From positions 34,596,001 through 34,660,000 of the forward strand of contig NC_088859.1 in NCBI RefSeq assembly GCF_963853765.1: 64,000 nt of DNA. Direction: 5' to 3'. Both the position numbers and the translations under genes were made by a program. This DNA is from Magallana gigas. Its lineage: Eukaryota. Below the pieces are notes generated by a model. It worked only from the letters and a program-made list of their open reading frames with translations, was not told where the DNA came from and did no database searches. Position 1 is the stretch's first letter; each line of letters opens with the position of its first letter. Shown here piece by piece: positions 11,248-61,510 of this stretch.

Positions 11248-14236
11248 ATGCGGGGCCCCGCCGGCCTATGGCTGGTCGCGTGGCTGACCGCCGCTGTTCT
11301 GTCCTCCGCCCTAGGCCAGACTTGTCAGAGGTCGACGCTTCCTTGGCGAATAGCCGACGGAACCGACCCTGTGAAAATGGCGCGAGGAAACGTGACGGTG
11401 GTGGCGCTGCTGTTGGCCAGCTGACCTATGTGTCAGCAGCAGGCAGAAGGGTAAATAAAACCCAACGCTAAAGATCATTGTATGACATAGCATTGCATTA
11501 CCTCAAATTGTAGCAATACTATAGGCTCCTCCAAACACAGTTTCATATTTCCTTTTCTAAAGCATGTACAATTATCAGATGCAGTTATCAAAAGTTTTCC
11601 TAGACTTCTGTTTAAATGCTTGTCAATGATTATGGTAAAAAAGTGACCTGCAAAACCTTTTTTTATCTTCTTCAGAGAGCTAAGTATGATATTCTGATTA
11701 AAGTTAATCTTGAATCTTAAACACATTTTAGAAATCTGTTACCTTTATAGAAACATTTCTTTAATTTATAAAAAAACAATTATAATGACCTTTAATTACA
11801 CTTGCCAAAAAATAAAATTAAAAAAAATGAAAAAATATGAAGGGAATAAATTTTAATGTTGTTGGACTTTTACCTATATTTATTAAAATTCTTGTATTCA
11901 AGTTCAGAGTTTCATAAAACACCACAGAATTAAGTAGAGCAGTTCTATATGTTTAGAATTAAGTAGGCCCTGTGAAATACAGATTCATTAGCATATCTAT
12001 TATGTGCGTCTTTTGTCGGTCACAAACCCCGTCCCTGTTTTAATTTGATACAGATGTCACTTTCCTGACATACATATATACAATGTATTTAAATAGCCGT
12101 TCACATAAATATATCATGCAAATTTCTTTTTTGCAGAAAATAGGTTTACCGATTAGATTAATTTTTGACACGTACACCTGCACATAGCAGTAATATTTTA
12201 CTTTTTTAAATTCATATTCTAAACGACAATAACGTTTTCTTTTCATTCATTTTTGTATTACCAACATACTGAAATACTGATACAGGTAATTATATTTTTT
12301 GCAGTTTGGAAAGATTGAAGACATCATATCAACAGATAGGTAAAAGAGACATCACATTCTTAATTGTCAACCATGTCGCAGGAAAGGACTCAATTAACGA
12401 ACTGACTAGGCGAGTGTCATTTCCGGTCTACCAAGATGACCATACTTTGTCGATACAACAAAAACTCAACGCTAGCATAGACGACCTATTCCTTTATGAC
12501 AGGTACAAAGTAATACAAGCTGTGTATTAACGACAATCTTGTTCAAATTGATGCGGATTGGGGTCGTAAATATTTGATACGTATTCATAATTTGTATATA
12601 AATCAAGTGCAAAGTTTGGCCATTTGGTTTATGACTGATTACTGTACAAAAAAAAAAAAATAGTGCAATATAAAACCCCATGGCCAACTAAAATGTATAA
12701 TTAATTTATATTGTTAATAACTCAATCAATGGCATCTCTTTTTTTTCTTTTTTTTAAAGATGCAGTACACTCGTGTATCACTTAAAAAAACCTGAAAGTC
12801 TAGTGTCCCAGGGGACCATGCAAAGCAACTTGCTGACCACCTACTTAAACAACCCTTGCAATTGCACTAACAACTCTAACTCAAATGTAGCGACTGAGCC
12901 GACACCAAAAGAGCAACTAACAGGATCTGGCAGTTCACATACTTCCATCACTCGCAGAAAAAGACATATTGTAAACAACTTTGGTTCATCGTTGGTATCG
13001 ATGAACAGCGTTGTTTCTCATAACGGTCGTGTTCCAAAGTGAACTACTCATAGATGAGTTGCCATGCGTCGAAATCGAGCGCTGCGATACCTTTTGGTGC
13101 GAAGACTATGAAAATTTATTAAGAAGTATCGGTCAAATTATGAACCTCAACACTCATGTGTCTGTCCCAATCCATCGCCTGCTCTGAAACAAGAGTGCAC
13201 CTGATACGGTTATGGAATCTCAAATTCAGTCAGTTTCTGATCATGTCAAGAGCGCAGTAACACTGTTTATAGCGAATGTATTTGCAATAATTGTCCTGCG
13301 TTTCGGAGACGGCATCGTCAGCAGTTCGTAGATGATGACACCAACTGTGAACTTCTGACGAGCTGACACTGTAACCAGGAAAATGGTTTGTCGGCAACAG
13401 AATGCTCGTGACAACATCAGCTCGCGGCGTTAGAGCAACATCCGAGCTGACATTGTCACCTACAAGCAGACGATTCCTTGCAAGACTGTCAGTGACAAGG
13501 GTCTCGAGGATCCTGATCCTGACAGGAAGTTGGTACCAACATCCAGTGACAGTGACCGTCCGAAGGCGCTTCCTGTCTCTGAGAGAGTGGGTCATCAACT
13601 TGACAATGACAACAAATGCCAGTAAGAGACATTTCCTGACAGTGACAAGTAAATCCCGGGGAAACGAACTCGCAGACCTGACAATGACACCATGATGATG
13701 GCGACTGTCTTTGACAGTGTCAACAGTCTATCAACAATGTTGTCACGTGACAGTGACCCATGGGAAATACGGTTGATGCATATGTCAGCTGCTCTAATCC
13801 CAGTGCGTTGACTGGCCACTGACAATGACCGCTGGAAACAAGCAGTACGCGTAACTGACAGTGACTGAGTGACCAGTCAGGTGTTAACTCCTGATCCTGA
13901 CAAAACAGCATAGGGTCTTGACAATGACACACTGTGGACGACACTAATCTTTCTTGACAGTGCCAAGACTCAACACAGACTACCGAGACCTGATACTGTC
14001 AGACACCTGTAGACTCCACCAATGATTCTGTCTGACAGTGTCGTGCAATCAACGGGTCTTGACAGTGACAGACTCAGACCTCAGGAGGCATTGTTTGACA
14101 GGAAAAAGCCGGTCGCTCCTGAAATTGACATCCTATGTGACACTGACAAGTCAGTACCTGATACTGTCGAACAGGGACATATGACGACCGCGCCCACTGT
14201 CTTTGACAACCACAGACCTGACAGTGACAATATTAG
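11248..14236 (+). CDS. SELENOP: Selenoprotein P, copy 1 (46 Sec, 625 aa); exons 11248-11450, 12305-12502, 12760-14236
   Basis: Signal peptide MRGPAGLWLVAWLTAAVLSSALG; VVALLLAS-U-PMC (UxxC, TGA 11422-11424), cf. vertebrate VVALLQASUYLC. GT-AG phase-2/phase-2 introns join in frame to ...LNASIDDLFLYDR|CSTLVYHL (cf. human LNGSKDDFLIYDRCGRLVYHL). From 13040 the frame has 45 further TGA and no TAA/TAG until TAG 14234-14236. Total 1878 nt. Two SECIS in the 3' UTR. Confidence 0.97.
13040..14236 (+). CDS. SELENOP: Sec-rich C-terminal domain of SELENOP copy 1 (UGA2-UGA46)
   Basis: In-frame TGA at 13040,13055,13109,13202,13238,13364,13409,13448,13493,13514,13520,13547,13553,13580,13601,13607,13637,13643,13679,13685,13712,13748,13754,13820,13826,13856,13862,13892,13898,13919,13925,13955,13991,14033,14060,14066,14096,14120,14126,14138,14144,14159,14204,14219,14225; mostly in U-x-U, U-x-C or C-x-U motifs. 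Confidence 0.95.
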
Positions 14237-14441
14237 AGAGTAGGGTCTCGTCAAATCAAATCGTCAAATCGTCTCTACTGGTAAACATGTTTTAGGGTCG
14301 AAATGCAAAGACTGTCTTAAGTTTGACCAACGATTCACTTGCAATAATTTTCTTATTGCAATGTGTAATAATTTCTTTCCAATGTTGTATAGCGCATCTG
14401 TAATCAGTGCCATGAAGATCGATTTGCTGCACATTCCGTTT

Positions 14442-14512
14442 CGTCCTCTGTCAATGACGATTTCCAGATAAAACCCAACAGGTCTCCGGGGGTCTGATCC
14501 AATCAGAGAACG
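14442..14512 (+). promoter_or_regulatory. SECIS1 (form-2-like) of SELENOP copy 1
   Basis: AUGA 14454-14457 and UGAU 14495-14498; helix II GAUUUCC/GGGGGUC plus AGA/UCU; unpaired AAAA 14470-14473; mini-stem CC/GG; helix I CUCUG/CAGAG. Confidence 0.9.
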
Positions 14513-14819
14513 GCGGAATATGTGAAATCTTTCTGATGACATTGACTAACTAGATGCGTTATACAACATATTGTTTATATATGTACCTCATCTCATTGTT
14601 TTTTCTACGGCTTTTTTTAATGATTAACACGGTAAAGAATTGTATACTCTAAAACCTGTATAAAAAAATTTCCGAAATATTTTTGTTCTGAAGAAAATTG
14701 ATATTTTTAACTAACTTCCAGCCTATTTTGTTTTCTGTTACTTCTTTTTTGTTTTTGTTTTTGTTTCAAGTAGACGCTATATCATGTCATCATATTTTCA
14801 GAAAAAGAAAAATTCTAAC

Positions 14820-14918
14820 AATGTAGACCCTGCTATATCCGGCCATGAAATGTCACCCTGAAACTTTAAAAAGAGGGGTGGTTTTGAATAATTTGGATCA
14901 ATAGGCAGCATCTACATT
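14820..14918 (+). promoter_or_regulatory. SECIS2 (form-2-like) of SELENOP copy 1
   Basis: AUGA 14845-14848 and UGAA 14885-14888; helix GUCACCCU/GGGGUGGU; AAA 14861-14863; mini-stem CUU/AAG; basal AAUGUAGA/UCUACAUU. AATAAA follows at 14994-14999. Confidence 0.92.
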
Positions 14919-17640
14919 GCTACTTTTTTCTTCAGTATGATCAATATTCATCTTTACAATACAAAAAACTTAATATGTATAATGTAACTACAAAATAAAC
15001 ATGAAAACTAGACTTGTTTTATGTACATGTACATAGCTTTCCAAAACTGTTCTATCTTTTATTCCAGTGATAAGAATGTACTACTATTGCACTACTAAGT
15101 ATATAGTCAGATAACAACCATAGGGTATCATTGATTAATGACCGTCGTAATCCGGAAATTTGGACATTTAATTCTTAGATAAAAAATAAGATGCACTAGA
15201 TTAAAGGATTCGCAATTTTGATTGACATGCAACATACATAATAAAGCAACAAATTTTCACTTTATTTAGGTAAAAATGGTCTCTCAATGAATATTTCTAT
15301 TGCAATCCAAAGCGTTATATTATCATGATTAAACTTCGTCGCATTTGAACGAAATATTCAAAACGAACATAAACTGCCAAAGAACATAGTTTTCTCTTTT
15401 CCTCCTTAAATAAAGAATACTGAAACATTGCACGTGTATCTACAAGCACACAGGCAATTTCACATTTAGTTTCAACACACCAGTATCATACAATTATAAT
15501 AAATTAATATATATCATAATACTTATCTTGAAACTGGTTATAAAACACTACTCGTTTTCAGTTGAATTTTTTAAAATGAGGATGTTTATTAGTATATTAT
15601 AATTAAATAAATAATATTTGAAAATCAAGTAAAGGAAAAAAGTACATAAAACAGTAAATCCCCAAGCAAAATATAGCATAGTTTGTGCATTGTTCTTGGT
15701 GAGTTTGCCTTGGTGGTAGTGAGGAGAGCCCATAACGAGGTCAAGGCGCCTGTCTCTCTTTTAATCCATACATGTAGTTCAAAGTTCATTTTAAATTCCA
15801 CTTTCCCCATGGATATTAAAGTACGTGTATGTGATAACTGAAAATCAAATTCAAGTATCTTTGAAAGAAATTCAAAATAAAAAAAGGCGGATCAAGTATG
15901 TTTCACAGAGTTGAGTCATGCTGCCATTTATTTTTATTTTTCTATGAATTCCAGTTACAGTATTCGACGTTATCTTAAATAAAATATTTTAAATTTCGTT
16001 CGGTACCACAAAAATAAAAACCGATGTTGCAAATATGTTAATGATTAATTTCCTTAGACCTAAGCATCGCCATCTTGTGTAAAATTGTTGGAGAATTGCT
16101 ATTACAGAAAGGAGAAAACTCAGTGTTTTAAAAATCAAAATGAGTTATTTCCCTTTTAGATAAAAAAAAAATAATAAACAGTTTGCCTGACGCATTTTTC
16201 TCGAAATGTTTTGGCCTAAAAACCAAATGATTTTTTTGTTTTTAAAATGTGATTCTGTAACCCCTTTCAAGATATCTGCAGTAGTTCTCTATTGATTGAC
16301 TAATCTATAAACTTTTGCGAATTTTTATTTTCAAATGACCAATTGCTTTCATACCATATAGCACACCAAATTTTAAATTGACCTGCGAGTGACCATGCGC
16401 AGTTTTTGAATCACAATAACTGTAAAACAGTAGATTCATTCTGGTATGATTCTTCTGATAATTTCTGTTAAAAAAATGAATGTTAAATATTAAACGTCAT
16501 ATAATTTGTACAAACCGCTCATGTAGCCCTAGAATATTATTTTGCAATTTTTTGCCACCATCATAAAATCACAAAGTGAAAAGGTAAAGTTTAAAGATAT
16601 TCAAATTTCGGATATTGTGATGAATATGCAACTGAAATCATTTTAAGGGGAATAATTTAATTATGCTTGATTATTGTGATTGAAAAGATAAAAACAAACA
16701 AACAAACAAAAAATCAAACAAATGCATTATATTTACATTTACATCACCCTTATAAAGACACATGGCAAATAAGTTTATTTAATTTCTTTAAAATACAAGT
16801 GATAGTGTTGAATTTCGTAAATATTATTTTATGCATTTTTTATTTCAGCTTTACAAATTAACGTTTATCATTACAATAATAAAATCATTCATATTAAAAA
16901 GTTGTGTTATACGTGTTATCCCTTAAAGTTAAAAATAGCAAATGGTCAGTTCTATATTTAATTCTGGTTGTTGATTGGCTGAGAGAATTTTCCCGCGGTG
17001 CGTGGCAGGTAGTTTTCTGGTGAGGGGTAGTTTTTGTCGAGCTCAGGAGAGGTGGACATTATATGATTGAGATTACACAACTAAATACGACTTCTGACAT
17101 GACTTTATACTGTAAGTTCTTTTACTTTTTAATTCACAGGTAAACTCTAATTAAATAGCGTAATATTTTTGATTGTCTTTAGTTTTTACATAAAAGTGAG
17201 AATGCTAAGTGTGAAAGCAGATAATGAAATTATTATTTGCTGGTATTTATCAAAAATAGTGTTCTATACGCACACATTTATCTAATGTTTTACAGGATCC
17301 TGACTTGATTAACAGCATTTGTCATAATTATTTGAAGTGGACCCTGATCCACAATCAGGTTTTACAAAATTTTGTTACCTAAATAAATCTATAAATTGTT
17401 GTTATTATAGAGATGCATATATATGATATATCTCTAAATGTATAAATATATGATTTAGTAATGTTGCATATGTACGTGTAGAAATTACATGGATGAAGTA
17501 ATTGTTTATGTAAGAGCGATAACTCATATAATTATGAACATCGTGTAATTGTTGTGTATATATTGTTTATATCATTATCATGTTATGCATATTATAAGGC
17601 ATACTCTCATTGTAAATTTCAGGGTTTTCATGTTAATACA

Positions 17641-21489: not shown

Positions 21490-22530
21490 AACAAGATGTA
21501 ATTATAATTAGGGCAATTATAAAGTCTCCCGAAAAAACGAGACCATCATTGGGGGTAGGGATGACCCACATGGGTCAAACTTTACAGACAAAAAGAGTAA
21601 AGACTTAAATATTTCTATTTGTGAAATTTCATGAGGTTCCCGGGTCGTCATTTACTGTAAGTCAAGTGAACCAACATGATCTAAGGAACAAAAATATACA
21701 TGGTTTAGGGAGGGGTGATATCAACCGTTTTTCAAGATATTTGGGCACTTCCTGTTCGAGGGGAGTCAGGACTACCCAAGGGGCTTATGACCTACAGACC
21801 ATTTGATGCCCCTTAACACAATGATCAAGAATATATGTGGTTTAGGGGGGGGGTGATATCAACCGTTTTCAAGATATTGGGGCTCTTCCCGTTCAAAGAG
21901 AAGTCAGGACCACCCCCGGGGCCCATGACCTAAATAACATTTTATGCCTCTTAACACAAGGAACATGAATATATATGGTCTAGGGGTGGGGATCTCAACC
22001 GTTTTTTAAGATATTGGGGCACGTCCTGTTCAAAGAGGAGTCAGGACCACCCCCAGGGCCTATGATCTACATACCATTTGATACCCCTTAACACAAGAAT
22101 CAAGAATATATATGGTTAAAGGGTGGTGATCTCAACCGTTTTCAAGATATTGGGGCACTTCCTGTTCGCTGGGGGTCAGGACTACACCCGGTTCCCATGA
22201 CCTACATACCATTTGATGCCTCTTAACACAAGAATAAAGAATATCTATGGTTTAGGGGTGGGGACCTCAACCGTTTTCAAGATATTGGAGCACTTCCTGT
22301 TTGAAAGGGGGGGGGGGGTCATGACTACCCCTTTGGCCCATGACCTACATACCATTTGATGCCTCTTGATATAAGGAATAACAATATATATGGTTTAGGG
22401 GTGGGGACCTCAACCGTTTTCAAGATATTTGGTCATTTCTATTTTCTGGAGGGTAGGGTTGACCCAACGGACGTCAAGATCTAATAAACTAAATCATATA
22501 TAATTACCAATAATTTATATGGTCTCCACT
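21490..22530. mobile_element. Helentron/HINE-like element carrying a ~137-bp tandem array (6 units, ~21690-22440)
   Basis: CAACCGTTTT..AAGATATT recurs at 21722, 21860, 21996, 22133, 22268, 22411; AACAAGA start; short subterminal inverted repeat GAGACCAT/ATGGTCTC. Family assignment is inference. Confidence 0.65.
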
Positions 22531-34342: not shown

Positions 34343-36749
34343 ATGCGGAGCCCCGCCGGCCTTTGGCTGGTCGCGTGGCTGACCGCCGCTGTTCTGTCCT
34401 CCGCCCTCGGCCAGACTTGTCAGAGGTCGACGCTTCCTTGGCGAACAGCCGACGGAACCGACCCTGTGAAAATGGCGCGAGGAAACGTGACGGTGGTGGC
34501 GCTGCTGTTGGCCAGCTGACCTATGTGTCAGCAGCAGGCAGAAGGGTAAGAACCTAAACCGAATTTAAAAAATATCAATTTCGAAGATTTTCTTTGCCCC
34601 TTCCTAGAAAATGCATTATTTTAAGATACTACACTTACCTTATGCTTAAATATACCCCCGTCTGAAATATTATTTATATAATGTGATTTCTTTCGTTTGA
34701 AGAACGAATAAGACATGGTAATTGTAATGAATGTATTCCGGAAATATAAAGTTTTCAAATCGAATACCTTTATTGATATGTTTAGTCACGCGGTTCAATA
34801 GAATCGGTTTCTTTAGGGCGACACGTAGAGATTCAGTTTGATGAGTCCAACTTATAACTTCATTTTGATATTTAATAGTGTATGTATCAGTAAATACATT
34901 AAGGCTGTTGCGTGTCGTTGCTAGTCCATTGAATGTGTTGTTGTTTTATTGCTGATTCGTATTAGAAATGAATGGGTTTTAAATGAGAATTAGTGTGTAA
35001 GCGTAATAATTAGAAATACAATTAATAAAAACAGATTACATCATGCCTTACTTGAGTCGCAATCTTCACACTCCTATTTAGCTTGTTACGCTGTCATTTT
35101 CTTGACAGTTATGTTGTACATTTATCAAATATTATGCAATTCTCGAATGCAAAATTTTAAGCTATCAACTTAATTTAATTCCAAGCCTTAAAAGTCCTTC
35201 AGTAATAAAGGATAACGCCAATTTCAGAAAAGGAAACGATTTTCATGAATCAACACTATATTCATTCTCTCAAATCAAAAAACTTACTATTTACTTTCAT
35301 TCTTTTCACAGTTTGGAAAAATTGATGACATCGTATCAAAATATAGGTAAAAGGGACATCTCATTTTTCATTGTTAACCATGCCAGAGGAGAAGCTTCTG
35401 TTAACGAACTGACTAGGCGAGTGTCATTTCCGGTCTACCAAGATGACAACACTTCGATGATACAACAGACACTCAACGCTAGCATAGACGACCTATTCCT
35501 TTATGACAGGTACAAAGTAAAGCCAATACTTTGGATAGATTTCAAAGTGAAAATCATTTCCCTGGTCGTAATAATTGAACGAAAAACAAAAAACCCAACA
35601 AACAAGAGAAAAAATGTCAATGTGACAGCAAACCTGGTTTTTCTTTTGTGTGAACAGTATCCATAATCTATTTGTCAATCCTGAATTGATAAACACTTCC
35701 TCTCCTAAGGAATGGGGGTACTATGTATGCAATATTTTGCGAAAAAAAATAACTTAGATAAACAGCTGGTATTTTTTTTTCATAAGTAATCAAAAATCAA
35801 AATCCAAGTAATATGCACATCTCTGCTCTATTTACTACTGATCTGCGTTTGGAGTATCCTTCCGACAGCCACCCGCCATTTTCTCCACTTCAATAACCGG
35901 GTTTTCCTTTTTGGAAAAAAAACGATTAAAAAGGGGCCAACATAGAAAGCCTTTTAAAAAGGCATTTGCTTACTAGAGCTAACGAGTTTTCAAATGTTAA
36001 AATTTATCAACATTTTAGTAATTATTTTTTTTTTCTTTTTTAGATGCGGCACACTTGTATATCACTTGAGAAAACCTGAAAGTCTCGTGTCTCATGGAAC
36101 CATGCAATCCAACTTGCTGACCACCTACTTAAACAACCCTTGCAAATGTACTGATAAGTTTAAATCAAAGGTTTCAACCAAGCCAACTCTATATCAACTC
36201 CAAAGACAGGCGGGCAGTTCGCTATCTTCCATTATTCGTCGACGCAGGCATGTATTAAACCACTTCGGTACATCGTTGGTGTCAACAAACAATGTTCCTT
36301 CTCGCAACGATCGTCCTTCAGATTGACCGAACAACAGATGACGCAGGCAAGTGTCTAACATAGTTGGTACACAAAATCGCGTTCCTTCAGACAATGCTCC
36401 TCAAGAATGACCGAATAGCAGATGACGCAGGCATGTGTCTAAAATAGTTGGTACACAGAATCGCGTTCCTTCAGACAATGTTCCTCAAGAATGACCGAAT
36501 AGCAGATGACGCAGGCATGTGCCTAAAATAGTTGGTACACAAAATCGCGTTCCTTCAGACAATGCTCCTCAAGAATGACCGAATAGCAGATGACGCAGGC
36601 ATGTGTCTAAAATATTTGGTACACGGAATAGCGTTCCTTCAGACAATGTTCCTCCTGTAGAATGACAGAATAGCAGATGACGCAGGCATGTGTCACGTAT
36701 ATTTGGTTCATCGTTGATATTCATGAACAACGGTCGCGTTGCAAACTAA
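34343..36749 (+). CDS. SELENOP: Selenoprotein P, copy 2 (11 Sec, 368 aa); exons 34343-34545, 35312-35509, 36044-36749
   Basis: Same exon sizes (203, 198 nt) and phases as copy 1; UPMC with TGA 34517-34519; ten more in-frame TGA (36324,36339,36408,36423,36492,36507,36576,36591,36663,36678); ends at TAA 36747-36749; total 1107 nt; both SECIS intact. Confidence 0.92.
36324..36700 (+). repeat. Coding tandem repeat, 84-bp unit (last 87 bp), ~5 units; unit U-PNSR-U-RRHVSKIVGTQNRVPSDN(A/V)PQE
   Basis: First TGA of each unit at 36324, 36408, 36492, 36576, 36663; units nearly identical and frame-preserving. Confidence 0.95.
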
Positions 36750-37253
36750 ACGGCCTGCGGATGCATTGCCCTACGTCAAATTGAGTAATATTCTGACCAT
36801 GTCAAAAGCGCTTTTTTGTCTCTTAGAGAGTGGTTCACTGCCTTAAAAAAATGAAGCAATTACCAGTACCAGTACGAGACATTTTAAGACAGTTACAAGT
36901 AAATCCCCTGGAAACGAACTCGCAGACCTGACAGTGATATTAGGATTATGGTGACTGCAATGGCAGCAGTTCATCAACACGTTACAGTGACCCCATTCAT
37001 TGATTCATATTTCAGCTCCTGTTATCCAATTGCGTTGACTGGCCACTGACAATATGACCTATTCAAACAGACAGAACGCGTAACTGACAGTGATAGGGCG
37101 ATCATGTGTTAATCCCGATAAACAGCGTAGAATCTTTCAATGTCAAAAGGTCTTGACAGTGGCAGACCCAGTCCTCGTGATGCTCTGTGTGACAGGAAAG
37201 AGCCAGTCACGCCTTTAAGTACTGTCTTTGACAACCGACAGTGGCAATATTAG
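36750..37253 (+). pseudogene. Decayed remnant of the ancestral Sec-rich domain in the 3' UTR of SELENOP copy 2
   Basis: Collinear blocks match copy 1 13043-14236, e.g. GTAAATCCC..GGAAACGAACTCGCAGACCTGACA, GCGTTGACTGGCCACTGACAAT, CGCGTAACTGACAGTGA, ACTGTCTTTGACAACC and the old stop CAATATTAG (37251-37253). About 500 nt versus ~1190 nt, with deletions and TGA changed to AGA/TTA/TGG/CGA. Confidence 0.88.
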
Positions 37254-37460
37254 ATAGCAAGATCGAACTCGTTAAATCGTCTCTACTGGTATCTACGCTT
37301 CATGATCGAGAGGCAATGATAATGTAAAGTCTGCCCGAATGTTGACGAAGGCAATACATGTAATTTTTTTTACTGAAATGTGTAATGAATCTTTACTTCC
37401 ATTTTGTATGACGCATCTGTAATCAGTGCCATGAAGATCGATTTGCTGCACATTCCGTTT

Positions 37461-37531
37461 CGTCCTCTGTCAATGACGATTTCCAGATAAAACCCAACAG
37501 GTCTCCGGGGGTCTGATCCAATCAGAGGACG
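37461..37531 (+). promoter_or_regulatory. SECIS1 of SELENOP copy 2
   Basis: AUGA 37473-37476 and UGAU 37514-37517; almost identical to copy 1; helix I CGUCCUCUG/CAGAGGACG fully paired. Confidence 0.9.
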
Positions 37532-37888
37532 GCGGGATATGTGAAATCTTCCTGATGACATTGAATTTCGAGATACTTTATACAATACATTTTATATACT
37601 TCACCCCAGTGCCATTTTCCTGAGGCCTGTTAGAAAGTAGTTTAAAGCTTTGTTAAACTATACTCTGAACTAATTTCTGAAACCTCTGTAAAATTTTGTT
37701 TTAAGTTATCAATTAAAAAAAATCAAAAAGAAATTTAAACTACCTTTCACCTCATTTTAATTTCTGTTAATAACTCCTCTTTATTTGTTTTAAGTAGAAT
37801 CTATCTCCTGTCATCATATTCTCAGTGTAAAAGTTGTAATAGTTTTATGCTTGAATGTTTTTATCAATGAGAAAAAATCATATCTATT

Positions 37889-37979
37889 CGGATCCTGCTG
37901 TATCTGACCATGAAATTTCACCCTGAAACTTTAAAAAGAGGGGTGATTTTGAACAATTAAGATAAATAAGCAGTATCCA
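37889..37979 (+). promoter_or_regulatory. SECIS2 of SELENOP copy 2
   Basis: AUGA 37910-37913 and UGAA 37950-37953; UCACCCU/GGGGUGA helix; AAA motif; CUU/AAG mini-stem; AATAAA at 38062-38067. Confidence 0.9.
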
Positions 37980-40657
37980 CATAGCTACGTTTTTTCTCTG
38001 TATGATCAGTGTACTAGTACATGTATTTCTTTCCAACGGCAAAAATGTTGTATACTTGAAAAATAAAGATAAAAACTAACAATTGCTTTGTGTAGATGGT
38101 TTCCTTCAATAATCTGTATTTTATTCCTGCGAAATGAGTGTACAACTTGGGACTACATCCAAATTAAGTTTATGAGGGCCATATGCAAATTACATAGGGG
38201 TTATTAATTAGACTGATATTTCTTAAATTCAAACGAAAAAATGCAAAGGAGCAAAAATATTACAATTTTGATAGAGGCTTACATGCTATTATAATACACA
38301 AGCTTTAAGTAAAGAATAAATACAATTCGTGAAAAATATGGTCCCTTATCAAATCCATTGCAAAGTGTACTTGAAGTAGAGATTAAATTTAGTCTTATTT
38401 GAATGAAATATGCAGAACCTGTAAAAATAACCAAAGAAAGCTGCTTTCATCCTTTTTATTTGCCCCTTAAATAATGAATACAAATACATTGTGTTTGTAT
38501 CTAAAAGCACATATTATCTTACATTTAGTTACAACACATCTCATCACTATTATACAGTCTTACAAGATTCAAGAGAAGATATTGATAAATTTCAAAAAAT
38601 ATACATGATATGCACGCTATACACAGAACATTTTCAGATTCATTTAAAAAATGGTGATGTCTAAATATATAGAATTATATTACACTTTCAATGCATTTAA
38701 ATACAATGCAGTTCTTGTTATAATTTGTATTATTATGTAACTATGTATTTCACTCATACACACTGCACTAAAACAACCAAGAAGTCTGAAGCTGAAGGAA
38801 ATTTAAGATGTTTCCATTTTGTTGATAAAATCACCGTACAAAATGTACATGGGACTAGAAAATTTCATCATTAAGTGGGTATAGGGTCACAATTAATGCA
38901 CGTTTACTGGTACATAATGAAAAAAAAAAGATGTCTTCGTGCATCTGCAAATCTCGATGACCCCAAAGAATGCAAGCATTTTATAAGTAGATTGTTTCTT
39001 AAGTATATAAATTCACCTGAATTGATTAATCTTGACATCATTCTTTATGCCAGATACCATGTTACAAATATGTAATAGCCAGTATTTACAACAAATCAAA
39101 ATTGAAAAATTTCATTAAGGAGGCTAGGTACAGTCAACAAATAAACCATCAGATCGTCCTTAAGGTAGTCCTATACTCGGCAGTAAATGGTCTCAATCAT
39201 TGGAGGCTTAGCTTTAAAAGACAGATATGCATTATAGCAAATTGAATACATGCCTAAGAAATCTGTATGTTTACATGCTAGATTTTTTGTTATCACCTCT
39301 CAGAAAGGTGTACCCCCTTGCAAATATCATTAACAATGACGAAATTTGCCAGACGTCCATTTTTTCCTAAAAAAATTATTACCAATTTTGGGGAAATTAG
39401 AACTGGATATACAAAATGGAGTACGAACATTTACTTAAACCATGTCACATCAAAATTTTTGTGCAAGTTGTTTGAGTAAGTATCCTTTAAGGGACTGATG
39501 CATCAAAATAAAATACAAAAAATGTGATGCTGGTATCGTGTGTGGTCATTTTTTATTTTTTCATGGACTCAAACCTAAATTCATGGTGTTTATTCTGTAG
39601 AATGCATCTTAGAAAAAGATTTGGTAAAATAAACCATAGGTTGACGGATTACTTTTAAGGCCATAAGTTCTTAACCAAAGAGACCCTAAAGAAAAAATCC
39701 GTAAAAATCACATTTTACTACAGTTTTCTGCAGAGGTATGTCAATAATGTTGGATATTGTTTAATCATTAATTAATCATTGCTTAATTAAATATGAATTA
39801 GCTTCTGTCTCTAAATTTTAACCGGTTTTATTAAAAAAAGAGAAAAATTCGGGGCGGGGGGACCCATCAAAACAAAGAATAAAAGCATACCTGTGATCAT
39901 GGTTAATTGAAAATTTCGTTTTTCATTTTACTCTTACAAAATCGAGTTTCTCAACATTTCATTTCTATCTCTCATACAATACATACATTACCATTCTAAT
40001 AGCTAATTATTGTCATTGTTTACAACAGGGATGCATAGCAAAATCAATACCGGGTATCTAAATCACTATGTAAAATTCGAACCAAGATTGTAAAATCCAT
40101 ATTATGACGTAGTGTGATACTGGGGCTACTTTAAATTTTTAAAAAATGATTTTTCATAAGCTGTAAACTTTTGTTTGGTAAAGAAAAATTCCATTTACTT
40201 TTGCTTTAAAATTTGAATACTTTCTCATATCTTTATATAAAGCTCTTCTTTTTAGAGTTATAGAATGATAAAGAGTGCAGTCTATAGTACCACAGAATGT
40301 GAGAAATTGGACAAAAATTGCTTTAGAGATATTCATACAACGTTTCTTCATGTATAGCCATAATAGGGATTATCATCCTTTTCAAATAAAATCATCGTTA
40401 AAGATATTCATACAACATTTCATATGTATATCATGTAGAGGTTATCACCCTTTTCAAATTAAACCACTGTTTTTCACACCTACACATGTATCAACCATAC
40501 AAAGTTTTGTAAAAATATATATGATAAAAGCATTATCAACAAAATTGGGGGAGGGGAACTTATAGATAAAAATAATGGAAAATTCAAATGAATTAGTAAA
40601 TAATGAACTCAATACACACAAAAAATTATATCATTTTATGTTGACTACACCTAGTGT

Positions 40658-43600
40658 TTATAGTTCTCCCCTCTTCCTCGACTTGATAGAGTAGTTTCCC
40701 TCCATGACATCTATAATATCCTGAGTGATATCCTCCACAGATATCCAAGGGCCCCACGCCTCCACAACATGTCCATTCTCATCCACCAAATACTTCCAGA
40801 AATTCCATGTTGGCTGTTTGATATTCTCTGAATATAGAAATAATGTAGTACATGTATTAGTACATGTAATAGATACACATCATGCATGGTGTGTTGCCAT
40901 TAAATACTTAATCAGAAAAGTAAGCAAGCTTGCACATACCCCATGCTCCCCCTTACCTGACAATACAATTTGTTTACCAAAAAAGTTCATCTTAATTACA
41001 TGAATCATAAGCTTACTAATATCTAAATTTGTTGGAACATAGAAAAAGACAGACATGGAGATTCCAATGCAACCTCCCTAACCCCCCCCCTCCCCTCCCC
41101 AAAAAAAATTATTAGCCAGGGTAAGGATATAATGTATACAATTGTCATATATATATTTACAATACAAGCATCAATTTTGCAACCAGGACATTTTATCGTT
41201 ACACATTTATTGTTTATAATGCTATTTGATTGCTTGATTTTTGAAATATGAAAGAGAATATTGATCAACATTATAAATATGGTAGCACCACAAAGCAAGC
41301 AACTGTAAAGAGTCTTAAATTCTCTGTAAATAAACACTCAGTATGCAAATAGAGTGGGTATTTTATTCAAACACTGTCAATGAATTATGTTTCCAACCAA
41401 ACATTTAACTCCATTCATCATTTCAGTTTCTAGTTGAGTGCCCTTTACTACTGTGCTTTTAAACATATTAAAGCAGTAAACATTTTCCTGCTATCCATAC
41501 ATTGCTAACTTAAGCGTTACATACACCCCACATCTTACCTGTTAAATATGACCACACATCTGGTGCATTATCTCCCACTACATCTACTTTCGAAAATATG
41601 GGAAAGTTGACGTTGTAGTTTTTCTTTGCAAATGATAAAATCTCATTGTAACTCTGAAAAATAAAAGTATTTTATATATTGTTGGACTACTAGCATTAAA
41701 TACCACACAAAAATAGTTAAGTCCAAAAAAAAATTTATTTATTGTTTTGAATTGCCTCCTGTCTAATTGAAATACCCCTTGATGATAAAATTTTATTTTA
41801 TAAATTCTATTTATATAAAGAACTTTTTTTTTATGGAGATTTCTACTTTTTACTAATAAGATAAACTTCGATTTTTGAACAAAAAAAAAAATATCTTAAT
41901 TTGATATTTATGTTCATATAATATAAAGAGGTTGTAATGTTCAATACTGGTAGTCTATGTCATGCTTTTCTTCATGCTTTCCAACAGATCTCTGATCAGA
42001 TTTCAGGCATGTAGCATGATTAGCATCACTACTGTAAATTCCTAATTAAACGCAAGGAATTGATATCCGCGTAAAATCGCGAGAGGCCCATCTCGCTAAT
42101 TTTAAAATCTCACTTTTAATTTTTAAACATATGTAAACTACATAAAACTATGATAAAATTTTGACATTAGCGATTTTATGTTCTCGCGATTTTATGGAAA
42201 ACCGTTGAATCGCGAAACTAAGTACTCACGTAAAATAAGGAATCTACAGAATTGAAAGATTCAGGAGGTCTGGTTCATCTTTATGTATATTTAGCAAAAT
42301 GTATGATGAAACAAGATATGTTTGTGAAACACTCCCTTTGAAGCAACCATGAAAAAAATAAACAGAAACTTCAAATAATTGGAATTTTTCTAAGTCAAAG
42401 GGGCATAACTCTTTCTAAAACTGCTCGATCGTACCAAACATCAAACTTTTTAGTATAATAAATCTGTAAACCATATTTCAATTCAATACGTGCAACCTCT
42501 GGGAAGAAAATGAACAGAAACTATGGTGGACTGACCAACCGACAGATGGACTGCAGCAAAGCAATATACCCTCCCTTCTTCGAAGGGGGGCATAAAAATA
42601 CAAAGGGGCCCCCCCTTGTTGCTATAAATCAGGCTGTCAAATTACAATTTTGCACAAAATGTTAAGAAAATAACAAAGATCAGTGAATGCAGACAGAACT
42701 GTAGATTCCTTATTATACAATAGTACGTAATTTTGAAATTCATCTGTTTTTTTAATCAAAACATTGAATATTTATCATAGTTTCATATAGTTTACATCTG
42801 TCTGAAAAATAAAAGTGATATTTTAAAATCTAGGAGATGTGCTTCTCATGATTTCATGAATATTTTTCATTTCTCGGGTTTAATAAGGAATCTACAGTAA
42901 TCATATGCTATACATACCCCTGGTTCTTGGTTACCAAACTGATTACAAGGGAAGGCTAGCACGGTAAATTTTTCAGTGGATCCCAGCTTGTCCTGGAGTC
43001 TGACTAGGGCTTTGTAGTGACCATCAGTGTAGCCACACTCAGATGCTCTGATTGTATTATACATGACATTGTATGTTCGACACTTTTGACGATCGACCCA
43101 AATCAAACATCAACCCCCTCTTACCATTGGCAAGATTAGAGCCATTTTTATAAGAGCTTGGACTTTGGGTAGTTGTGTTAAACAGCAATGTGTATAATCC
43201 TGTCTATTTCATTGTAAGCCACTGGGCAATAGCTCTTTGAAATCAACAAGATTTGTCTGGCTTTTGACCTAAGACTATGCAATCTGCGCATATTTTGCTT
43301 GAAACTGCTTCATTTTTAACTTGTTTTGATGCAAGAATTAGATAGCTTGTTAAAATGGTTTTATTTCATGTGTATTCCTCTTTAGCTTGTGACCTGGAGA
43401 CTGTATGCTGACTTCTTGGTGGGACTCCAAGGCTTCAAGCTTAGATGAGAGTCATCACAAGCCAAGACCCACTGGCTAACAGAACCAAACCCTCTGGAAT
43501 CTGGCTTCCATCTTGCAGGTTACCTTGGCTTTGCCTGGATCCCTCCAGCAGTTCCCTTTCCTGAACAAGTCATTCAGTCCTCCTTGAGATAATTCACCTC

Positions 43601-59406: not shown

Positions 59407-60784
59407 GCTTTGTATAAAACTTGCTTTTGATGATAGTGTCACAAAATACACAATCTACTATTAATTTGATACATGCAGTGAATTTGAGAGGCCGTGACGG
59501 TGGTAAAGCTCGATTATAGGGAATTGTTATGTGTATTATATACCTTTTAACTCCACAAAGGGCATGTGTATGTTTATTTGAGAGCTATTGACCATCACTG
59601 CGCTGTAACATTTTGAATCTTCAGCTGCTATTAAACGATCTTTAACCAGGTTAAATGCTAGAAATCAATGGATTGCAGTGTTTCTATGGCGACAAAATAT
59701 GTAGTTGCAACAGAAGAAATAAACCCGTAAAAGGAAACCAAGCTTTCTTTGTACAGGCTTTATGGACACAATCACCCATTATTTGCAAGTCAACTAAAAA
59801 ACCCCACCGAAAAACTGGAATGTATATACACGTATACAATATCATAGATACAAAAAACCCCCAAAACAAAATGAATTTTGATTCAAATTTATCAGGTCTT
59901 TTGTTATAACATGCATGATTAAATGCAGTAACAATATTCTTCGACAAATTAGTGGAGAACCTTGTATACAACTGCTTCAACGCAGTCGCTGGATGTTCTA
60001 AATAAAAAACAATAACAGAGAAAAGTACAAATAAAGTTCATAACTAGTTCTTGTATTAATAGATAGTAAATAGAGAGTGTATACACTCTCTGCGTTTTTG
60101 ATTTAACAAGACAAACAATCACTATGATTTATTGATGTTCAATACAAGTTTAAACTTCCCAAAGCGAAACGTATAAAAGCACATTACACTGTGCTTTGTG
60201 TGTACACTGAAAATCAATGGCTCGGGTTTATATCAAATATTGATATCAAGTTTCAGTCGTTGCGAAATTTCCATTTTATGCTTCATACACAAAGATGAGT
60301 TAATTTTTAAAAGAAATGCAGGATATCACATAAAGATCTAGAAAATCCTATTATAAAATTTGAATCTGTTTTGCTAGTTGCATGCATGAGAGATCCTAGT
60401 ATGTGCATCGATTTCAGAATACTGTCATAGATCAATGGTAGGCATATTCTGGATAAATACTAAACAAATATTCAACAATAGAGGTAAAGGTTGCCGTAAG
60501 CTTTGCCATCTAGTCATCCTGATCATCTGTATTATAGTACAAAAAGATCTGTAGTGACGGGGGGACCATCGATGTATCCTAAAACTCACTGAAATGCAAA
60601 CAAAACCAAATAAACAATCAACAAACATCCTAACAAATTAATACCTTTTTCTGATAAACTATAAAACACGCAAGCTGTTGGTACCAGAAAATGAAACAAA
60701 TTTTAATATGACTATGTTTCATTATGACATACTTAGTACTTTGCATGTCATCACATTAAGTAACGAACCTACATTGTACAAGAA

Positions 60785-61510
60785 AGCTGCATGTCATCAC
60801 ATAAGGTAGCAAGCCTGTAAGTAAGCTACAAGTCATCATATTAGGTAGCAAGCCTACGAGTAAGCTACAAGTCATCATATTAGGTAGCAAGCCTACGAGT
60901 AAGCAACAAGTCATCATATTAGGTAGCAAGCCTACGAGTAAGCAACAAGTCATCATATTAGGTAGCAAGCCTACGAGTAAGCTACAAGTTATCATATTAG
61001 GTAGCAAGACTACCAGTAAGCTACAAGTCATCATATTAGGTAGCAAGCCTACATGTACAAGTAAGCTGCAAATCATCATACAGTGTATTAGGTAGCAACC
61101 CTGTAAGTAAGCTGCAAGTCATCATATTAGGAAGCAAGCCTATGAGTAAGCTACAAGTCATCATATTAGGTAGCAACTCTACAAGTAAGCTACAAATCAT
61201 CTTATTAGGAAGCAAGTCTACGAGTAAGCTACAAGTCATCATATTAGGTAGCAAGCCTACGAGTAAGCTCATCATATTAGGTAGCAACCCTGTAAGTAAG
61301 CTACAAGTCATCATATTAGGTAGCAAGACTACCAGTAAGCTGCAAATCATCATATTAGGTAGCAAGCCTGCGAGTAAGCTACAAATCATCATATTAGGTA
61401 GCAAGCCTACGAGTAAGCTACAAATCATCATATTAAGTAGCAAGCCTACAAGTAAGTTACAAGTCATTATATTAAGAAGGAAGCCTACAAGTGGGTTGAA
61501 AGTCATCATA
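60785..61510. repeat. 39-bp minisatellite, ~18-19 units
   Basis: Consensus GTAAGCTACAAGTCATCATATTAGGTAGCAAGCCTACGA. Confidence 0.93.

Follow-up and report, generated by a model that had tools for sequence, protein, structure and literature searches.

The stretch of DNA analysed here, hereafter the window, comprises 64,000 nt of the oyster Magallana gigas (contig NC_088859.1, positions 34,596,001 to 34,660,000 of the forward strand; 33% G+C) and contains two tandem genes for selenoprotein P (SelenoP) on the + strand, copy 1 at 11.2–15 kb and copy 2 at 34.3–38.1 kb. These are the only two SelenoP loci in the 564-Mb oyster genome, and the sequencing runs in which the stretch occurs are oyster runs. 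Copy 2 is not dead but expressed as a selenoprotein gene, and its selenocysteine (Sec)-rich tail has been replaced, not only lost. According to the explanation favoured here, which taken as a whole is very probably correct, copy 2 would be an expressed paralog whose ancestor had the Sec-rich tail in full length, and its frame would now end at the UAA at 36747, where its module once had the UGA here called UGA2. The old tail behind this stop, now part of the 3' UTR (untranslated region) and no longer translated, would be breaking down through deletions and frameshifts and as its TGA codons disappear. The gene itself would have remained a working selenoprotein gene, with the thioredoxin-like domain at its N-terminus, its first UGA (UGA1) and both of its selenocysteine insertion sequence (SECIS) elements, and an 84-nt module carrying UGA2 and UGA3 would have been tandemly duplicated upstream of the stop to give the 10 tail UGAs of the assembly.

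Copy 1 served as the comparison gene. It carries UGA1 at 11422, inside the motif ASUPMC (UxxC), and 45 in-frame TGAs in its last exon ahead of the TAG at 14234-14236, which makes 46 UGAs for the whole gene. An earlier note on this DNA had aligned AAC GGT CGC GTT GCA AAC TAA ACG GCC TGC GGA TGC of copy 2 (36729-36764) with AAC GGT CGT GTT CCA AAG TGA ACT ACT CAT AGA TGA of copy 1 (13022-13057), which places the TAA of copy 2 at UGA2 and a TGC at UGA3, and this alignment was confirmed. A second in-frame TAA, which the note had placed 13 codons past the first, was found at 36786-36788, and all three frames are closed behind the stop. The note had also described some 500 nt of collinear, deleted tail that extend as far as the old TAG (37251), and this too was recovered by blastn, with 36817-37145 matching copy 1 at 13574-13929 (E 3.7e-44), 37143-37214 matching 14049-14120 (E 6e-10) and 37221-38008 matching 14196-14943 (E 2.5e-103); the global alignment of the remnant to the copy 1 tail gave z = 43.6 against shuffles. 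The remnant at 36817-37253 is collinear with copy 1 13574-14236 up to the old terminal QY-TAG, and the string CAATATTAG at the old stop (37245-37253) is common to both copies. The ancestral tail of about 1.2 kb has shrunk to a remnant of 504 nt. Both this homology and the lesions within it are direct observations. In a MAFFT alignment 11 of the 45 tail TGAs of copy 1 are still TGA in the remnant, 19 have been deleted and the others have mutated, to TAA, TGC, TTA (three times), AGA, CGA, TGG (twice) and more, and in the pairwise alignment the surviving TGAs shift among frames 0, 1 and 2. The three frames of 36750-37253 contain 3–7 TAA or TAG codons each and none is open; the remnant is untranslatable because every frame holds at least three such codons and frame-shifting indels are frequent. 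RNA reads cover it at a depth of 10–54x, on the sense strand only. The remnant is a transcribed part of the copy 2 3' UTR, lying between the stop and the first SECIS element, and is presumably without function. An allele with a 146-nt deletion in the remnant (window 37028-37175, the two sides joined by GACCCAG) was seen in RNA contigs of two runs (X15 and X20).

Ahead of the stop lies the 84-nt tandem array, which comprises five complete units and the start of a sixth. The units are mutually 84–91% identical, and each copies the module RRHV..FG..N.VPS..-U-...R-U that contains UGA2 and UGA3 in copy 1. The array holds ten in-frame TGAs, at 36324, 36339, 36408, 36423, 36492, 36507, 36576, 36591, 36663 and 36678, and over the 234 codons of 36044-36746 TGA is the only in-frame stop, with no TAA or TAG. 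The sixth, partial unit carries the TAA and the TGC and runs collinearly into the sequence downstream of UGA2 and UGA3 of copy 1. Because the five full units keep the TGAs derived from UGA2 and UGA3 in frame, the UGA2 position is present six times in copy 2; the claim that the stop sits at that position therefore holds for the collinear sixth unit, but not for a unique site. As assembled, copy 2 would encode 11 Sec and not 1 or 2, and we infer Sec decoding of the UGAs in the array and termination of translation at the UAA. The statement in the earlier note that most of the Sec payload had been silenced overlooks these 10 new in-frame UGAs upstream of the stop and gives an incomplete picture. 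The number of array units appears to vary among M. gigas alleles. A shorter allele lacking 183 nt (61 codons) in frame, with the junction 36278>36462, was found in seven raw RNA reads and in the contig L001, and an M. gigas-like contig, L004, has two array units with four TGAs; the unit counts of these Logan contigs (L001 and L004) may have been lowered by collapse of repeats in short-read assembly, and only the 183-nt allele is firm.

Table 1. Features of the two SelenoP genes in the window (window coordinates).
Feature	Position	Strand	Basis or remark
Copy 2 exon A: ATG, signal peptide, UxxC	34343..34545	+	translation; 97% identity to copy 1 11248-11450
Copy 2 exon B (SelP_N domain)	35312..35509	+	87% identity to copy 1 12305-12502
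Copy 2 last exon, 5' coding part ahead of array	36044..36229	+	open frame
84-nt tandem array from UGA2-UGA3 module	36230..36733 (about)	+	five complete units and start of sixth
Copy 2 stop TAA	36747..36749	+	aligned to copy 1 UGA2 (13040-13042)
TGC at former UGA3	36762..36764	+	aligned to copy 1 TGA 13055-13057
Sec-rich tail remnant, now 3' UTR	36750..37253	+	ends at former stop TAG 37251-37253
Copy 2 SECIS element 1	37465..37527	+	Rfam SECIS_1, 29.3 bits, E 0.007, below gathering score 35
Copy 2 SECIS element 2	37901..37964	+	Rfam SECIS_1, 26.1 bits, E 0.05, below gathering score 35
Copy 2 transcript end	37965..38124	+	3' end near 38037-38124; one molecule and an adapter-ending contig stop at 38037; depth falls from 14 to 1
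Copy 1 SelenoP gene	11248..14899	+	exons 11248-11450, 12305-12502, 12760 onward
Copy 1 SECIS-like elements	14446-14508, 14836-14899	+	Rfam SECIS_1 search

Orthologues of copy 2 were obtained as Logan contigs, which were found through the stop-free N-terminal part of the gene. They include L004, which is 94–97% similar to copy 2 of the window, L001, a spliced mRNA that is about 90% similar, and L003, L005 and L006, genomic contigs from three runs of one study that are 79–86% similar and represent a relative diverged by about 20%. The TAA stands at the homologous position in all five contigs and the TGC in L003, L005 and L006 as well, so that the placement of the UAA in a related species, on which the earlier note had let its reading depend, agrees with that reading; conservation of the stop in relatives is thus an observation. 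The relative (L005/L006) has two array units and a partial one, with four TGAs placed as in the first and last units of M. gigas. The lesions common to M. gigas and L005/L006 comprise the TAA at UGA2, the TGC at UGA3, a 6-nt insertion, deletions of 151, 313/314, 5, 122 and 8 nt, and a TAG followed by the 5-nt deletion near the position of 13865; the 151- and 313/314-nt deletions together take out 12 UGAs. Private to M. gigas are remnant indels of -7, -9, -7, -7, -1, -71, +7 and +2 nt, and private to the relative is one CAA>TAG change. Since the TAA, the TGC and seven further lesions are common to both, the truncation is old, and the tail was dead, with about nine lesions, prior to the split of M. 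gigas and the relative. The long tail itself is ancestral in oysters, as the note had supposed: the long SelenoP copies of C. virginica, Saccostrea and Ostrea have 51, 48 and 47 tail UGAs, respectively, and the same ..UQPQTUQUQY end, which gives a range of 45–51 tail UGAs across oysters.

The proposal that one substitution silenced the Sec payload is unproven, as the tail already had the TAA, the TGC and seven other lesions at the split and the shared lesions do not reveal the order in which they arose. It is a serious possibility, although the less probable one, that the UAA arose later than another lesion, either the TAG with the 5-nt deletion near 13865 or a large deletion, in a tail that was already untranslated. 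The common ancestor already had the five deletions, the 6-nt insertion and a TAG beside the TAA, no sampled lineage shows an intermediate state, and the short copy of C. virginica stops elsewhere, 4 codons past its own UGA2, which indicates that other routes to truncation exist. The frame of the relative speaks for an early UAA: its large deletions sum to 465 nt (155 codons), so the TAA frame passes into that of the old tail and follows it over some 110 codons, which include 13–14 in-frame TGAs and only one extra stop of its own. This match of frames is a hint of a primary stop followed by slow decay, or else a one-in-three coincidence. The 1-nt indel at 36812 that breaks in M. gigas the frame kept in the relative is still polymorphic. 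Of the idea that the locus records how Sec-rich domains die, the old and transcribed fossil behind the UAA survives the analysis, while the single-substitution cause is unproven and the array had been missed.

The expression and integrity of copy 2 bear on a second alternative, namely that it is a transcribed pseudogene in which the array UGAs are plain stops and any product would end at UGA1 or UGA2. Transcription and splicing were observed directly. Stranded polyA RNA reads (X24), which lie on the sense strand only, cover exons A–C, the array, the remnant and both SECIS elements, and the splice joints 34545>35312 and 35509>36044, the only GT..AG introns seen, are spanned by 66 and 14 polyA-RNA reads, respectively. 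No canonical joint was found in the polyA reads for an intron within the last exon that would skip the TAA, and no canonical AATAAA was found at the transcript end. At the end of exon A, 81 loose read ends match the exon B junction of copy 1 vs the 66 junction reads of copy 2, which indicates that both copies are expressed at a similar level in the sampled runs. UGA1 of copy 2 (TGA 34517-34519) lies in ASUPMC, in the same context as in copy 1. The dN/dS (ratio of nonsynonymous to synonymous divergence) between the copies is 0.47 for exon B and 0.35 for the 5' part of the last exon. The public protein P0003/XP_011427856 (Magallana (Crassostrea) gigas 'selenoprotein P-like') begins in copy 2 at the Met that follows UGA1, ends at UGA2 and is identical to the translation of the window save for three residues (Pro for Leu, Ser or Arg). 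A precomputed match to Pfam PF04592 (SelP_N) exists for it, and its relatives carry the same domain.

Both SECIS matches of copy 2 are collinear with the pair of copy 1, and both fold as a stem with an internal AUGA/GA core. The first is identical to copy 1 14446-14508 at 63 of 63 positions within flanks that are about 80% identical; the second is identical to copy 1 14836-14899 at 56 of 64 positions and its fold has z -2.4. Their conservation is an observation in its own right. At the gathering thresholds Rfam gives no SECIS in the window, and the matches appear in E-value mode only. The distance from the stop to the first element is 716 nt in copy 2 vs 210 nt in copy 1. Copy 2 is not dead, because it is spliced and expressed, keeps UxxC and both SECIS elements and has dN/dS values of 0.35–0.47. 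The case for a pseudogene draws on a dN/dS of 0.62 in the coding part of the last exon, on the public annotation, which ends the protein at UGA2, and on the non-UGA stop within the array of L001. It has to contend with the complete identity of SECIS1 amid diverged flanks and the kept core of SECIS2, the kept UxxC and constrained N-domain, expression on a par with copy 1 and a frame of 234 codons whose only stops are TGA. It also has to contend with the indels. Those of the coding part are in frame, with 15 and 183 nt segregating before the TAA and 3 nt as a single one-codon difference from the relative, unlike those that segregate past it (1, 1, +1, 2 and +4 nt and the 146-nt deletion). The N-domain is open and the SECIS elements are conserved, and only the stretch past the TAA is pseudogene-like. 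A pseudogene is, on this evidence, unlikely.

Three side observations concern this part of the gene. The stop in L001 (L001:1200-1260, RRH*SK) lies in a spliced contig of 90% identity whose exons A–B are nearer to copy 1 (94%) than to copy 2 (90.6%), and L001 could be a chimeric assembly, a product of gene conversion or a further truncated allele. Intron 2 of copy 2 contains a high-copy repeat (window 35600-35830), with DNA word depth up to 9450 and many loose ends. The same intron is 534 nt long in the window vs about 270 nt in the relative (L005).

The rate of decay bears on whether the remnant is dead or still has a function, be it through translation by recoding or readthrough or as an RNA spacer or structure before SECIS1; a function would explain that it can still be recognised. 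Over 508 shared columns the remnant differs by 16.9% (K 0.19) between M. gigas and the relative, and the functional tail by 5.7% (K 0.059) between M. gigas and another species. In the adjacent coding part L005/L006 and L004 show a synonymous divergence (dS) of 0.24, with the stop, the frame and four UGAs conserved. The remnant thus decays at about the synonymous rate. The comparison of TGA with other codons that the earlier note had called for gave unique M. gigas changes at 13 of 71 former TGA columns vs 42 of 340 other columns; in two functional copy 1 lineages the TGA columns show 0/89 unique changes each. The copy 1 orthologues of another species (L008–L010) keep 45 of 45 tail TGAs and the exact length of the tail without any indel. 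Former UGA codons in the remnant are no longer protected, and the changes of the M. gigas branch are spread flatly over codon positions (19:11:12). A functional remnant would fit with its far better preservation than that of the introns, with its pace of change in the relative, which does not exceed that of the flanking UTR (22/508 vs 14/215 unique changes), and with the short copy of C. virginica, which also has about 850 nt between stop and SECIS1. This explanation is nevertheless quite improbable, given six more TAA or TAG codons in the TAA frame up to the old TAG and no frame open, a 146-nt deletion allele and several indels of 1–4 nt that segregate, a flat codon-position spread with unprotected TGAs, and divergence close to dS. 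An assembly error at the TAA or in the remnant, or a rare allele of the reference individual, is scarcely credible as an explanation: no support for it was found, independent contigs of five other runs (L001, L003, L004, L005 and L006) show both the TAA and this remnant, and the site is covered in four runs, three by contigs and the fourth by raw reads, with no variant at 36747 among the variant rows listed.

Several points weigh against the explanation that copy 2 is a working gene with a dead tail behind its stop. The SECIS matches score under the Rfam gathering cut-off, and both the decoding of the array UGAs and the termination at the UAA are presumptive. The dN/dS of 0.62 between M. gigas and the relative indicates that the last-exon coding part is weakly constrained. 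The TAA appears fixed in four runs only as far as the variant rows listed go. The decay of the remnant is uneven, with 55 unique substitutions in M. gigas vs 22 in the relative (p = 2e-4) and about 8 private indels vs about 0, while its flanks evolve equally in the two (12 vs 9 and 11 vs 14 unique changes). The slower decay in the relative leaves room for some constraint there. Gene conversion from copy 1 was considered as the source of the well-kept remnant of the relative and was rejected, as shared derived substitutions and indels are spread over the whole remnant; the remnant is also about equally far from both copy 1 orthologues (0.161 vs 0.169), in a comparison made without the relative's own copy 1. 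A repeat inserted into the M. gigas intron leaves only the last ~90 nt to align, so that the intron failed as a neutral reference for the divergence of M. gigas from the relative.

The two copies are 97%, 87% and 75% identical in exons A, B and C, respectively, and their introns show no alignment above chance (z 1.4 and -0.2 against shuffles). Between the copies dS rises from 0.04 in exon A (11248-11450 vs 34343-34545) through 0.26 in exon B to 0.71 in the 5' part of exon C; the low value of exon A would be consistent with gene conversion at the 5' end as well as with constraint at the RNA level around the start codon and UGA1. Elsewhere in the window are a mir-124 precursor at 479-549 on the + strand (Rfam, 57.3 bits, above gathering), a tRNA-like match at 9445-9518 on the - strand (36.3 bits) and, from self-comparison, further tandem-repeat arrays at 21683-22439 and 60744-61510 with units of roughly 137 nt and roughly 39–40 nt. 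Exons of a glutathione peroxidase (GPx) homologue lie at 40658-41620 on the - strand, downstream of copy 2, and are syntenic with GSHPx beside the SelenoP pair of C. virginica.

Gains and losses of this kind are as a rule deduced from end states only. The locus is of interest because an intact 46-UGA gene and a paralog whose tail was cut at its first tail UGA, but is still legible, stand side by side, so that both partners of one duplication can be studied. It gives a dated list of lesions, shared and lineage-specific, a direct comparison of what becomes of UGA codons under selection and in its absence (0/89 vs 13/71 positions changed) and a view of a new array of Sec modules arising through tandem duplication. 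It also offers a test bed for the distance tolerated between stop and SECIS, for processive Sec decoding on a short repeated tail and for whether a short SelenoP has been favoured repeatedly, as the vertebrate SELENOP2 might suggest. For annotation it is relevant because the public models of both oyster proteins end at UGA2. It is tentatively proposed, at a little less than an even chance for the two parts jointly, that copy 2 is regrowing a Sec tail through an array of variable copy number, with alleles that would encode ~5–11 Sec per protein, and that the tail of one tandem copy died independently in the C. virginica lineage. If true, oyster SelenoP would form a natural series of loss and rebuilding of a Sec-rich domain.

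Comparison with other oysters places copy 2 beside a similar pair. C. virginica has a short copy (P0007 / A0A8B8CHD9; L007:4367-7466) and a long copy with 51 tail UGAs (L007:10001-14400), and the order on L007 is the short copy, then the long copy, then a GPx gene on the opposite strand. The short copy retains a single tail UGA, with a stop 4 codons later, keeps both SECIS regions, with SECIS1 about 850 nt past the stop, and shows a faint tail remnant at L007:6504-6716 (62% identity over 228 columns, z = 20). It resembles copy 2 of M. gigas in being the tandem partner of a long copy with the same GPx neighbour, the SECIS pair and a tail remnant. It differs in having its stop elsewhere than at the UGA2 position, in lacking the 84-nt array and in a remnant that has all but vanished. 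The short copy is distal to GPx in C. virginica and proximal in M. gigas, and this opposite arrangement indicates that different members of the pair lost the tail in the two species; the loss in C. virginica is most simply an independent truncation. The protein tree of the N-domain did not resolve whether copy 2 of M. gigas and the short copy of C. virginica are orthologous, and the position relative to GPx was used instead. Saccostrea and Ostrea have one long SelenoP copy within +/-10 kb.

Baclaocos et al. 2019 (J Mol Biol 431:4381) reportedly described a Pacific oyster SelenoP with 46 UGAs. Copy 1 corresponds to such a gene, with UxxC, 45 tail UGAs, two SECIS elements and three coding exons. 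Copy 2 derives from this architecture too, with a remnant that can be aligned to the tail of 45 UGAs; it is unlike the 46-UGA gene in its UAA at a position derived from UGA2, its dead old tail and its tail UGAs from a young 84-nt array. No description of the second oyster SelenoP gene was found in the literature searched, which did not cover Baclaocos et al. 2019. Already known (PMC13134290, PMC3473315) are multi-Sec SelenoP in molluscs, the single-Sec SELENOP2 of vertebrates and the modular evolution of the tail.

In the vertebrates SELENOP2/SELENOPB is a single-Sec paralog of the multi-Sec SELENOP1, and invertebrate SelenoP homologues fall outside the vertebrate SELENOP1/SELENOP2 split, according to PMC13134290. 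Copy 2 resembles SELENOP2 as a post-duplication paralog that has the N-domain, UGA1 and SECIS elements, with few or no Sec of the old tail, while its partner keeps the Sec-rich tail. It is unlike SELENOP2 in that the oyster duplication is independent, the dead tail is still visible and the tail has re-expanded to 10 UGAs. As to descent from the SELENOP1/SELENOP2 split at the vertebrate root, the oyster copies lie in tandem and the protein tree groups them together, with weak resolution. Copy 2 is an analogue that probably works like SELENOP2 and not a member of its clade. Lobanov et al., as described in PMC3473315, have reported the interconversion of stop and UGA codons at the end of the SelP tail. 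The likeness is that a single-base change between TGA and TAA or TAG moves the end of a SelenoP frame. There the idea concerns extension or trimming of the very C-terminal end by a single codon or a small number of them, whereas the stop of copy 2 lies at the very start of the tail and has orphaned about 1.2 kb of ancestral coding sequence.

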